In this document: positions 38,501 to 41,037 of the stretch, in pieces | Numbering within the stretch: position 1 is the stretch's first letter | Layout: every line of letters begins with the position of its first letter | NCBI RefSeq assembly: GCF_031769215.1 | Contig: NW_026782484.1 | Location: forward strand, 744,001 to 808,000 | DNA length: 64,000 nucleotides | Direction of reading: 5' to 3' | DNA from: Ylistrum balloti | Taxonomy: Eukaryota | The notes under the pieces: generated by a model | What the model saw: only the letters and a program-made list of their open reading frames with translations | What the model was told of the DNA's origin: nothing | Databases searched by the model: none | Program-made: the position numbers and the translations under genes

Positions 38501-41037
38501 TCACAATTTTGGTAAGGCACATCAAGATGCTTTTTGAGAAGAAAAAAAAAATAAAAGTTTACAGATTCACAACACACAACCCTGGACATAGGTGATAGCA
38601 CTAGGTCACTCGAGACTTTGTCTCAGGTGACCTAATAATTTTTTCAAAGTGACACCATTGCTGTGAATCCCATTTCTTATACACCTGTAATTTAGTTTGT
38701 GAAAAATAACAAAGCAGAACCTTCAAGATAATACTTGTGACACATGCTGTATTTATATTTCTTTTTTTTTTATTAAAGTACCTCTGTACATAAAAGTAAT
38801 AATATCATTTCTGACAGCTTACCTGTGTTTTCTTGTTGTACAAAACATGTCGAAATGCTTGCTGCTTCAATAGTAAAGCATCCAAACAAACGATAACTGG
38901 CTCTGACTCAATGTATTTATCTACAACCTTTTGACAGTTTTTCTGAAACACAATTTATAGATTGCACATTTTGAAATACAAATGCATATTCAATTATTTA
39001 TAAATGTACTGACAGCAAAATGATCCAAGTTTGTCATATATGTCTCCTCTGATAATAATTCATATATGTGTAACAAGAAGGAGCAATGAAAAACACTCTC
39101 CCCTTAAGTTTCTACAAAGGTACAGACAGCCTGTGGAGTTCCTGCTTGTTATAAAAGTATGTTTTCTGACACATTGACAATTTCCAATTTCTTGATCATC
39201 TATTGACAGAAGAAAGTTGCCTCTTTTCAAAATCAGTTCTATTTTCAATAGCCATGTTCTCTTTCATATTATGGAATAAGGGAACATTTAATGCAAAACA
39301 AAGTAGGCACCTGCTGTGTGCCAAGGAGATACATGTTAATAGTCTGAAAGGTTTTGATTATCTATCCATTACTTTACTTTTGTCTTGCTATTGGTTGTGA
39401 GAGTTAACTTTTTGTTAGGTTTACAAGTGTAACTGTAACAGAGGTCATTATTTATTTCAATGCCTCCGCTAGGAATCGAACCCGGGACCCCTGGCTTACT
39501 AGCCTGACGCTCAACCAATCGAGCTAAAGAGAAGTTCTCTCTAGTCGAGTGGTATATTGCGGCTAGTATTTTAACAGGGTTACATAATCCCCCTCCAGGA
39601 AATAACTCGTTCTGGAGTTTCCAGGGGTTACAGCGATGCTGGTGGGGCATGGCTAAGTACTATTCACGGGTCCCTACATGGGCGCCAATGTAACAGAGGT
39701 CATTATTTATTTCAATGCCTCCGTTAGGAATCGAACCTGGGACCCCTGGCGTACTAGTCTGACGCTCAACCAATCGAGCTTAAGAGAAGTTCTCTCTAGC
39801 CGAGTGGTATATTGCGGCTAGTATTTTAACAAGGTTACATAACCCTTGTAAAATACTAGCCACAAAATACTGCTCGGCTAGAGAAAACTTCTCTTTAGCT
39901 TGATTGGTTGAGCATCAAACTAGTAAGCCAGGGGTCCTGGGTTCCATTCCTAGCGGGGGCATTGAAATAAATAATGACCTCTGTTACATAAGAACAAGAT
40001 TAGCAGGAATCTGTTGTGGCAGCCATTGCAAAAAATTTGGAGAGTTGTTTGGGAAAATGAGTGAAAATACAACATTTCATTACATTGACAAATACTTATG
40101 TTAGTAGATAATTGTTTTATCTTTCTATCCATGTATGATTTATAACTATCATGCTGATGTAAATTAAAAGAAATATTGCCTGATTTCTGGTTATGATAGA
40201 GGAAGCAAAACAAGATGTTGTTTTTATTTCAGGAGGAATCTGACTACCGACCGTACAAAGATAAAAATAAAATCACAGATAAATTGTGAGAACACTTCAG
40301 ACTTGAACATTCGAGCAACAAATCAACCATAGTACTCAAACATTTTATATTTGAGAGACAAGATTTTAGTTCACAGATATAACATGTATTTTTCCTCGTA
40401 AAAAAAATAAACAGGTAATCCACTTGTATTGAACTGTTGAAACACTTTACGACTCACGCAACTAAGTAAGCCATTGAACGACTAGGGATTCTGTTTCAAT
40501 CTGTTAGTCCCTACCAAAATTTAGATTTGGTAAAAGAAATCGTCCTCTGTGGGGACGGAATTCATAATTTATAATGAATGAAGGAAATCTGCATAATCAG
40601 ACTTCATAAAAAATTGATTTGGGACGGATTCAGACAGGTGTAAAATGTCGGGGGTTTCACTTGTAAACTTCCGGTTAATGAGTTCTGAAGGCGATGACAG
40701 TACGAGATGCCATTAAACCTACTAAATTATGTCCTTTGCAGTCTTCGACAAGTATGCTTCTATGAATCTAAACAGTTGTTACTTGTGTCGAAGTTCAAAT
40801 ATTAATGTTTTAGCTTTAATTCTAAGTAATAACATATAGTGACTTATTTATTTGCATGGGTCCTTTACATCGACATTGCACAGTTGCACGTTGCGTTTTA
40901 AGTTTCTATTTCCTTACACAGTGCTCAATTTTGATGATTCCAGATTTAAAATCACGATAGAGTTGGTCAGCAACACTTCCACAGCCAATACATTTGTAAT
41001 CCCGTGTATGTAATGCCAATTCGGTTTGAGTGGTCAT
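35474..41037 (-). CDS. ARV1: ARV1, ER membrane lipid-homeostasis / GPI-biosynthesis factor, complete 242-aa CDS in 6 exons
   Basis: Minus-strand exons 41037-40918, 38942-38823, 37953-37794, 36807-36744, 36631-36483, 35589-35474 (729 nt, phases consistent). Arv1 homology domain CIGC-x20-CKNC QKVVDKYIESEPVIVCLDALLLKQQAFRHVLYN, then WKLVAILLLCDAF, and LLSNFGKILVIPAVLW..ANIQAIRV, all matching known ARV1 motifs. Confidence 0.93.
35890..36445. repeat. Near-perfect minisatellite, 51-bp unit, about 10 copies, in ARV1 intron 5
   Basis: gaccaatatacctctgatgaccagctgtatcatagtgtggattgtacactt; open in four frames because the unit length is a multiple of 3. Confidence 0.97.
36483..36631 (-). CDS. ARV1: ARV1 exon 5
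   Basis: ggcag|SEELMRGVLLSNFGKILVIPAVLWGKNYSHIYVRLSHLFVCAANIQAIR|gtatat. Confidence 0.92.
36744..36807 (-). CDS. ARV1: ARV1 exon 4
   Basis: tacag|ELVIVVSIIIVCIRMVSTEEFR|gtaag; phase 1 in, phase 2 out fits both neighbours. Confidence 0.85.
37794..37953 (-). CDS. ARV1: ARV1 exon 3
   Basis: tttag|GHWKLVAILLLCDAFTKLLLEHR..ALEWGLYQNFSLALI|gtact. Confidence 0.92.
38190..38636 (-). mobile_element. Non-autonomous Helentron/HINE-like (pearl/CvA-like) interspersed repeat in ARV1 intron 2
   Basis: Terminal hairpin AGGTCAC-tc-GAGAC-ttt-GTCTC-ag-GTGACCT (38603-38633); its reverse complement closely resembles the end at 62226-62260. The family assignment is from recalled architecture; boundaries are approximate. 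Confidence 0.5.
38823..38942 (-). CDS. ARV1: ARV1 exon 2
   Basis: ttcag|KNCQKVVDKYIESEPVIVCLDALLLKQQAFRHVLYNKKTQ|gtaag. Confidence 0.94.
39428..39988 (+). mobile_element. Older solo LTR of the same family, opposite orientation, split by the TRIM insertion (39428-39433 + 39844-39988)
   Basis: Removing the TRIM and one TAAC restores a 151-bp TGTAAC..GTTACA unit similar to the TRIM LTRs. Flanks CAAG/TAAG are a possible 4-bp TSD with one mismatch. Confidence 0.85.
39434..39839 (-). mobile_element. TRIM-type non-autonomous miniature LTR retrotransposon (406 bp) with tRNA-derived LTRs
   Basis: Two 151-bp direct repeats (39434-39584, 39689-39839; 7 substitutions by eye), each TGTAAC..GTTACA. 104-bp internal region with PBS TGGCGCCCATGTAGGGAC (39687-39670) and PPT GGAGGGGGA (39596-39588). 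TSD TAAC at 39430-39433 and 39840-39843. Confidence 0.9.
40918..41037 (-). CDS. ARV1: ARV1 exon 1
   Basis: ATG at 41037; MTTQTELALHTRDYKCIGCGSVADQLYRDFKSGIIKIEHC|gtaagg. Confidence 0.92.

Follow-up and report, generated by a model that had tools for sequence, protein, structure and literature searches.

Can a retrotransposon of a few hundred base pairs be transcribed by RNA polymerase III (Pol III) from a transfer RNA relic carried within its own long terminal repeats (LTRs)? The question is raised by a 406-bp element in a stretch of 64,000 nucleotides from Ylistrum balloti (RefSeq assembly GCF_031769215.1, contig NW_026782484.1, positions 744,001 to 808,000 of the forward strand). The whole of this stretch is called the window here and is numbered from its first letter. 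The element lies on the minus strand at 39839-39434 and has the layout of a terminal-repeat retrotransposon in miniature (TRIM). It almost certainly belongs to Helenus (TRIMp3), a published group, and the tRNA-like part of its LTRs is, as judged by alignment, derived from a tRNA-Thr gene. On the sequence, use of this relic by Pol III appears about as probable as its disuse. We lean slightly towards the whole chain, i.e. a Helenus-type TRIM together with use of the Pol III promoter. The original prediction had proposed a TRIM with tRNA-derived A and B boxes in its LTRs as an analogue of the plant element Cassandra, and the structure and the tRNA-Thr alignment described below uphold that proposal. 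All motif coordinates given in it were exact in a minus-strand motif search. The features concerned are as follows.

39689..39839, minus strand: 5' LTR, 151 bp, TGTAAC...TGTTACA, a direct repeat with ends set by target duplications
39585..39688, minus strand: internal region, 104 bp, between both LTRs
39687-39670, minus strand: primer binding site (PBS) TGGCGCCCATGTAGGGAC, 18 nt, directly after the 5' LTR, complement of host tRNA-Lys(UUU)
39596-39588, minus strand: polypurine tract (PPT) GGAGGGGGA, 2 nt before the 3' LTR
39434..39584, minus strand: 3' LTR, 151 bp, direct repeat of the 5' LTR
39461..39533, minus strand: tRNA-Thr-derived module of the 3' LTR (LTR positions 52-124), collinear with host tRNA-Thr
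39716..39788, minus strand: tRNA-Thr-derived module of the 5' LTR, from motif search and alignment
39526-39515, minus strand: A box TAGCTCGATTGG of the 3' LTR, exact motif search
39482-39472 (3' LTR) and 39737-39727 (5' LTR), minus strand: B box GGTTCGATTCC, exact motif search
39502-39496, minus strand: CTAGTAA, anticodon-loop relic of the 3' LTR, exact motif search
39456-39451 (3' LTR) and 39711-39706 (5' LTR), minus strand: AATAAA
39840..39843, minus strand: target site duplication gtta (4 bp), upstream copy
39430..39433, minus strand: target site duplication gtta (4 bp), downstream copy

The two LTRs are direct repeats of 95% identity with TG...CA ends, and with the internal region they account for the full length of the element (151 + 104 + 151 = 406 bp). 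Their boundaries were set from the target duplications seen at the window copy and at most other loci that were examined. The PBS pairs perfectly over 18 nt with the 3' end plus CCA of host tRNA-Lys(UUU), the gene used for this comparison having been recovered from the same genome. The open reading frames of the element are merely mechanical, one of them extending into the flank, and none had a Pfam match. Since the element has no coding capacity, an autonomous LTR retrotransposon must reverse-transcribe and integrate it in trans. The boxes and the anticodon loop had been predicted in each LTR. The B box and AATAAA are indeed present in both, but the exact A box and CTAGTAA occur in the 3' LTR only, the 5' LTR having single-base changes at the A box (AAGCTCGATTGG) and at the loop (CTAGTAC).

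Elements of this kind were named Helenus by Kojima in 2024 (Biology 13:119, PMC10886601) and were joined with Cassandra and Ajax under the proposed name TRIMp3. That survey reported 51 families of Helenus among pteriomorph bivalves (Ostreida, Pterioida, Mytilida, Pectinida as well as Arcoida), and the published length range of Helenus is 311-1263 bp. Animal Helenus elements have 4-bp duplications, tRNA-Lys is among their primers, and Gypsy has been suggested as their autonomous partner. The sequences TRGCY...YGG and GGTTC are kept across the Helenus elements of three kingdoms. In seven bivalve families the LTR module scores as tRNA-Thr and could encode tRNA-Thr. The tRNA-like module of bivalve Helenus is estimated to have been kept since the ancestor of Pteriomorphia, i.e. 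for >470 Myr, and an origin of Helenus by insertion of a short interspersed nuclear element (SINE) into a TRIM LTR was proposed (PMC10886601). According to the same author, use of Pol III by Helenus cannot be concluded without experiments (PMC10886601), and our literature search for later experimental validation of such use found none.

The window element has the TRIM layout, a PBS and a PPT, a tRNA-derived LTR part, a 4-bp duplication and kinship to a listed Helenus family. Its A box TAGCTCGATTGG fits the Helenus box A TRGCY...YGG, and box B is present as GGTTCGATTCC. The PBS string of the window element occurs in only two entries of DataS1 of PMC10886601, namely Helenus-2_ArIr (Argopecten irradians) and Helenus-1_PeMa (Pecten maximus), and the element was aligned by eye with these published sequences. 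Over LTR positions 1-124, Helenus-1_PeMa differs at ~10 places (92% identity) and Helenus-2_ArIr at ~14 places (89% identity), and three of the differences from the scallop Helenus LTRs are private to the window copy. The first 19 internal nt, PBS included, are identical in all three elements, and the final 50 internal nt, PPT included, are ~92% identical. The LTR is 151 bp long in the window element as compared to 159 and 160 bp in Helenus-1_PeMa and Helenus-2_ArIr, and no alignment with these relatives could be made for the AT-rich tail of the LTR (positions 125-141) or for the central part of the internal region. Contigs from four other organisms also carry related LTRs, the unaligned ends of which match the published Argopecten and Pecten tails. 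The original prediction had taken the element for a SINE/LTR hybrid not recognised as a described family. This novelty did not survive comparison with the literature, as tRNA-bearing TRIMs have been known since 2024 and close scallop relatives of this family are listed in Kojima's data. Judged against Table S1 of PMC10886601, where no row matches 151 + 104 + 151 = 406 bp exactly, the window family may nevertheless be an unlisted species-level Helenus family.

LTR positions 52-124 (73 nt) were collinear from end to end with host tRNA-Thr(AGT/TGT), with 51/74 positions identical. The alignment had a z score of 13-14 against shuffles, and the Thr isoacceptors outscored tRNA-Lys, tRNA-Arg and tRNA-Gln, the isotypes taken into the comparison being Thr, Lys, Arg and Gln. 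The CTAGTAA of the 3' LTR is the anticodon loop of host tRNA-Thr(AGT) at all bases, as had been predicted. From the start of the A box to the B box there are 44 nt in the LTR and 45 nt in host tRNA-Thr. On the strength of this alignment, this part of the LTR goes back to a tRNA-Thr gene. Read off the sequence, the module has a perfect D stem, a T stem with 4/5 pairs and a broken anticodon stem. The acceptor stem, predicted to be broken as well, is weakened rather than broken, five of its 7 pairs being kept (3 Watson-Crick, 2 G-U); the prediction stood for the other two stems that it described, D and anticodon. The minimum-energy fold of the module has a four-arm cloverleaf-like shape. A functional tRNA-Thr gene was ruled out by the ARAGORN, Rfam and fold stability results given below and by the broken anticodon stem.

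Were Pol III to use this relic, TFIIIC and TFIIIB would assemble on the A and B boxes, perhaps helped by the ATATA of a hairpin upstream of the module. Transcription would start near LTR position 45-52, and the transcript would cover what is left of the LTR, then the PBS, the internal region and the PPT, and lastly the 3' LTR. The promoter, being downstream of the start, would itself be part of the RNA, so that both LTRs would regain it. As no terminator of four T lies inside the element, the transcripts would end in flanking DNA. The element is primed by tRNA-Lys(UUU) and has to be mobilised in trans by an autonomous LTR retrotransposon; first-strand transfer would proceed via LTR homology. 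The tRNA-gene-like spacing of the boxes, the lack of conservation of the poly(A) signal and the short length of the element fit transcription by Pol III, as does the retention of TRGCY...YGG and GGTTC across the Helenus elements of three kingdoms (PMC10886601).

The signals surrounding the module were examined for both polymerases. A hairpin with a 7-bp stem (CTAGCCG...CGGCTAG) occupies LTR positions 21-46 (window positions 39539-39564 and 39794-39819) and is kept in the Pecten and Argopecten relatives. Its loop holds a conserved ATATA, 25-30 nt upstream of the A box, which could serve the TATA-binding protein for either polymerase. AATAAA lies ~20 nt before the LTR end in the subfamily to which the window copy belongs; the Argopecten relative has ATTAAA and the Pecten relative has no canonical signal. 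AATAAA was present in 21/73 sampled LTRs (29%) and is thus a subfamily trait, absent from the Pecten relative, which is a mild argument against a conserved poly(A) signal for RNA polymerase II (Pol II). The absence of sense-strand runs of four or more T had been regarded as suggestive of Pol III. Such runs are indeed absent from the element, but 49% of shuffles lacked them likewise (p ~0.5), and this chance-level observation was discarded as evidence.

Several results weigh against use of the relic by Pol III. ARAGORN called 0 tRNA genes in the window, and a scan with Rfam at E values up to 10 returned neither tRNA (RF00005) nor 5S. The module fold was not more stable than shuffles (z = 0.2). 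Within the A box, the canonical A14 is replaced (GA for AG), and the A box of the window copy's 5' LTR is without its first T. There is no internal Pol III terminator in the element, and the TATA-like motif and the AATAAA of the subfamily suit Pol II equally well. In contig runs of guessed RNA status, pieces ran on from the start of the LTR into differing flanks, as would be obtained from genomic DNA or from read-through, and they had no starts or ends. The conservation data belong with these results. Conservation was expressed as per-column frequency against the window copy. In the core family, the tRNA-like part (0.968) and the rest of the LTR (0.967) were equally variable, as expected of neutrally decaying copies. 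Six unselected diverged LTRs had identities to the window copy of 0.72 in both the A box and the 5' part, 0.79 in the B box and 0.87 in the tail; an earlier set of diverged LTRs was biased, as it had been retrieved by an anticodon-loop plus B-box pattern. Genome-wide tiling was carried out with eight LTR segments as 19-mers, with up to 3 mismatches and the control subtracted, and gave the following numbers of matches.

LTR positions 1-19 (segment 1), LTR 5' end: 2,288 genome-wide matches minus control
LTR positions 20-38 (segment 2), upstream hairpin: 2,333 genome-wide matches minus control
LTR positions 39-57 (segment 3), up to module start: 3,308 genome-wide matches minus control
LTR positions 58-76 (segment 4), A box / D arm: 1,754 genome-wide matches minus control
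LTR positions 77-95 (segment 5), anticodon arm: 1,797 genome-wide matches minus control
LTR positions 96-114 (segment 6), T arm / B box: 2,579 genome-wide matches minus control
LTR positions 115-133 (segment 7), 3' acceptor and tail start: 2,692 genome-wide matches minus control
LTR positions 134-151 (segment 8), LTR 3' end: 1,673 genome-wide matches minus control

The A-box segment was among the lowest and the B-box segment just modestly higher. A 63-64-bp satellite inflates the counts of segments 1-3, fewer bases are specified in segments 7-8, and the control of segment 8 was very noisy. Between species, LTR positions 1-124 were conserved as a whole and the tail was not, with ~90% identity for the 5' 51 nt of the LTR and ~93% for the tRNA-like part (by eye). 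The extra conservation of the boxes over the rest of the LTR, on which the original prediction had relied for its test, was seen neither within the family nor in the diverged set nor in the tiling. By this test, which is weak, the conservation of the A and B boxes does not exceed that of the LTR around them.

The same observations have to be weighed under other explanations. That there is no LTR retroelement here at all, and that a 255-bp tandem repeat or satellite, or adjoining SINE copies, mimic an LTR-internal-LTR order, deserves next to no credence. LTR-I-LTR-I-LTR arrays that repeat every 255 bp do exist in this genome, and the 5' part of the LTR does form satellites of 63-64 bp. However, both dispersed copies and three-LTR arrays have precise TG...CA ends and matching 4-bp duplications, a perfect 18-nt tRNA-Lys PBS adjoins the 5' LTR, and the polypurine tract stands 2 nt before the 3' LTR. 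The same architecture has been published for 51 bivalve families (PMC10886601). The target duplications and the PBS refute the satellite or SINE reading. A more serious alternative, although an unlikely one in our estimate, accepts the Helenus-type TRIM and has it transcribed by Pol II, so that the tRNA-Thr relic would be a passenger in the R/U5 leader, devoid of any promoter role and left by an old insertion of a SINE or tRNA into an ancestral LTR. The conserved ATATA upstream of the module would then belong to Pol II, as would the AATAAA near the LTR end in the subfamily and the ATTAAA of the Argopecten relative, and the SINE-into-TRIM-LTR origin proposed by Kojima (PMC10886601) agrees with such a history. 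So do boxes that are conserved no better than the flanking LTR, and a 5' 51 nt that is conserved between species like the tRNA-like part. A passenger should erode, however, and the module is estimated to have been kept in bivalve Helenus for >470 Myr (PMC10886601) and is kept in diverged families of the genome, with the spacing from A box to B box maintained; the presence of AATAAA in only 29% of the family LTRs and the lack of a canonical signal in the Pecten relative also speak against Pol II.

The module might instead be kept for some other role: as a TFIIIC-bound chromatin or insulator site, as a source of short tRNA-like RNA, or as a structure for tRNA-processing enzymes or partner proteins. 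We consider this improbable. The B-box and 3' acceptor segments had more matches (2,579 and 2,692) than the A-box and anticodon segments (1,754 and 1,797), a weak excess between segments that differ in specified bases and control noise. The fold is cloverleaf-like with four arms, but its stability does not exceed that of shuffles; seven families could encode tRNA-Thr and SINE-like regulatory roles may apply (PMC10886601), but the module of the window element has a broken anticodon stem and was not called as a tRNA by ARAGORN or by Rfam.

The element was also compared with other known systems. It resembles Cassandra, as summarised in PMC10886601, in being a miniature LTR element with a small-RNA gene relic and, putatively here, an internal Pol III promoter in the LTRs, and in forming tandem LTR-I-LTR arrays. 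The relic, however, derives from tRNA-Thr (type 2 promoter) rather than from 5S (type 1), the host is an animal, unlike that of Cassandra, and the duplication is of 4 bp as against 5 bp in plant and fungal Helenus and Ajax (PMC10886601). Pol III transcripts and terminators are documented for Cassandra (PMC10886601), whereas in the window element Pol III use is predicted from sequence. An assignment to Cassandra itself was rejected, as Rfam gave no 5S match at E values up to 10 and the relic is tRNA-Thr-like. Like the tRNA-derived SINEs (SINE2), the element is non-autonomous, occurs in high copy number and has a head derived from a tRNA, A and B boxes included. SINE2 elements are usually without an internal terminator, so that read-through into flanking DNA is expected of them, as it is of the window element. 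In contrast, they have no LTRs, PBS or PPT, are mobilised by long interspersed nuclear elements (LINEs), and have variable duplications and a LINE-like or A-rich tail. The LTRs, PBS, PPT and fixed 4-bp duplication exclude a SINE2. Another bivalve TRIM, biv-TRIM (Satovic et al. 2019, Sci Rep 9:19962, PMC6934838), likewise occurs with solo repeats and tandem arrays. Its repeats are 202-218 bp and its internal domain 77-80 bp long, the PPT is GGGGAGA, TGATCCCAAAGGAC is conserved, and neither a clear PBS nor a tRNA-like module was reported (PMC6934838). The window element is not a biv-TRIM: its 151-bp LTRs, 104-bp internal region and PPT GGAGGGGGA differ, and TGATCCCAAAGGAC is not in its internal region.

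The genome scanned for further copies comprised 648 Mb in 1,372 contigs, from which 30 loci were fetched for close inspection. Among 2,368 first-look candidates there were dozens of scored full-length copies of 92-95% identity, and genome-wide matches of the LTR 19-mers minus control correspond to ~1,700-2,700 LTR equivalents. Most of the 30 fetched loci, LTR-I-LTR-I-LTR arrays included, had exact TG...CA ends and a matching 4-bp duplication. In 40 pairs of LTRs from the same element, the median identity was 95.4% and the highest 99.3%, and the family was thus active fairly recently. The exact A-box string was found in 49/73 and the exact B-box string in 53/73 sampled family LTRs. At LTR positions 125-140 (window 39445-39460) the tail exists in two variants, the GAAATAAATAATGAC type of the window copy with AATAAA and a GAGATGA... 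type without it.

As tRNA-bearing TRIMs were named and surveyed in 2024, the family carries little weight as a discovery. Being large and fairly young (~1,700 or more LTRs), it could serve to test Pol III transcription of Helenus, and it could also help to find the autonomous partner of the group. For annotators, such LTRs spread thousands of tRNA-Thr-like A-box/B-box sites through introns, the window element, upstream of an Arv1 exon and in the orientation of that gene, being an example. A segment of the Arv1 family is encoded by this exon (minus strand, 38942-38823), which matches Pfam PF04161 at profile positions 27-64 (E = 1.3e-16). Since it is the nearest exon downstream of the element on the element's strand, the element is probably located within an intron of the Arv1-family gene, in the gene's orientation.

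The immediate surroundings of the element contain one further feature of the same family.

39840..39989 plus the first 6 bases (TGTAAC) at 39428-39433, plus strand: older solo LTR of the same family, in opposite orientation to the element

The solo LTR forms inverted repeats of 88-89% identity with the element LTRs, and as a plus-strand LTR it gave a 90% match. The position of its first 6 bases at 39428-39433 indicates that the TRIM inserted 6 bp inside the older solo LTR, the flanks of which (CAAG / TAAG) agree at 3/4 bases. Rfam matches to microRNA hairpins were spurious and arose because of this inverted LTR pair.

Immediately 5' of the A box, a T-rich tract, CTTCTCTTT, stands in place of the 5' acceptor strand of a tRNA. 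Sense-strand runs of at least four T recur in the diverged LTRs of the genome at this place only: five of the six fell within positions 50-58, shortly before the A box. As a long shot, the tract may be a Pol III stop: transcripts would start slightly upstream of it in the 5' LTR and end at it in the 3' LTR, with a very short terminal redundancy resembling the 18 nt of Cassandra. If true, this would be a design for termination and strand transfer not described for Helenus. The clustering might equally be a trivial outcome of a T-rich tract that is one transition from TTTT.

Nine genomic places have the same 18-nt tRNA-Lys PBS followed by non-TRIM sequence. Four of them continue with ACACACT (G000:C359:968336, C184:5212, C789:225683 and C835:11691) and two with TACAAGG (C569:1140853 and C1371:29436), the remaining places being C39:291219, C240:2204339 and C578:138132. 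These are candidates for the autonomous partner or for other non-autonomous relatives. At another locus (L051:103-262 and 1463-1614), two diverged LTRs of 79-80% identity to the window LTR lie 1.36 kb apart with the tRNA-like module kept, and this pair possibly represents a larger non-autonomous member. Diverged Helenus-like LTRs retrieved by the anticodon-loop plus B-box pattern (L039:~1405-1600 and L041:~1405-1600) had the putative primer sites ATGGCGATGGGA... and TGGGAACCATG..., and the difference between these sites suggests that several Helenus families with different primers coexist in the genome.

Tandem LTR-I-LTR-I-LTR elements with a 255-bp period were found at L002/L008 (G000:C173:151089-151752), L009/L015 (C181), L019/L026 (C653) and L047/L048 (C19:408725-409335). 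At least three tandem arrays had a matching 4-bp duplication around the entire array (ttgg, taat and tata), as likewise reported for plant TRIMs and for zebrafish LTR-11_DR. Head-to-tail arrays of LTR positions ~3-66, with a period of 63-64 bp, were present beside a normal LTR at L043:1614-1999 (G000:C14:131442-131844), and further such arrays at G000:C70:382326-383415, C109:92704-93426 and C738:143803-144124. Their unit takes in the hairpin and the T-rich tract together with the first part of the A box, and they are a small satellite derived from the LTR. On the antisense strand of the hairpin, most copies read TAGCCGAGTGG, a perfect match to the A-box consensus TRGCNNAGTGG that is similar to the D arm of a class II tRNA; TTTT follows ~25 nt on, with no B box.

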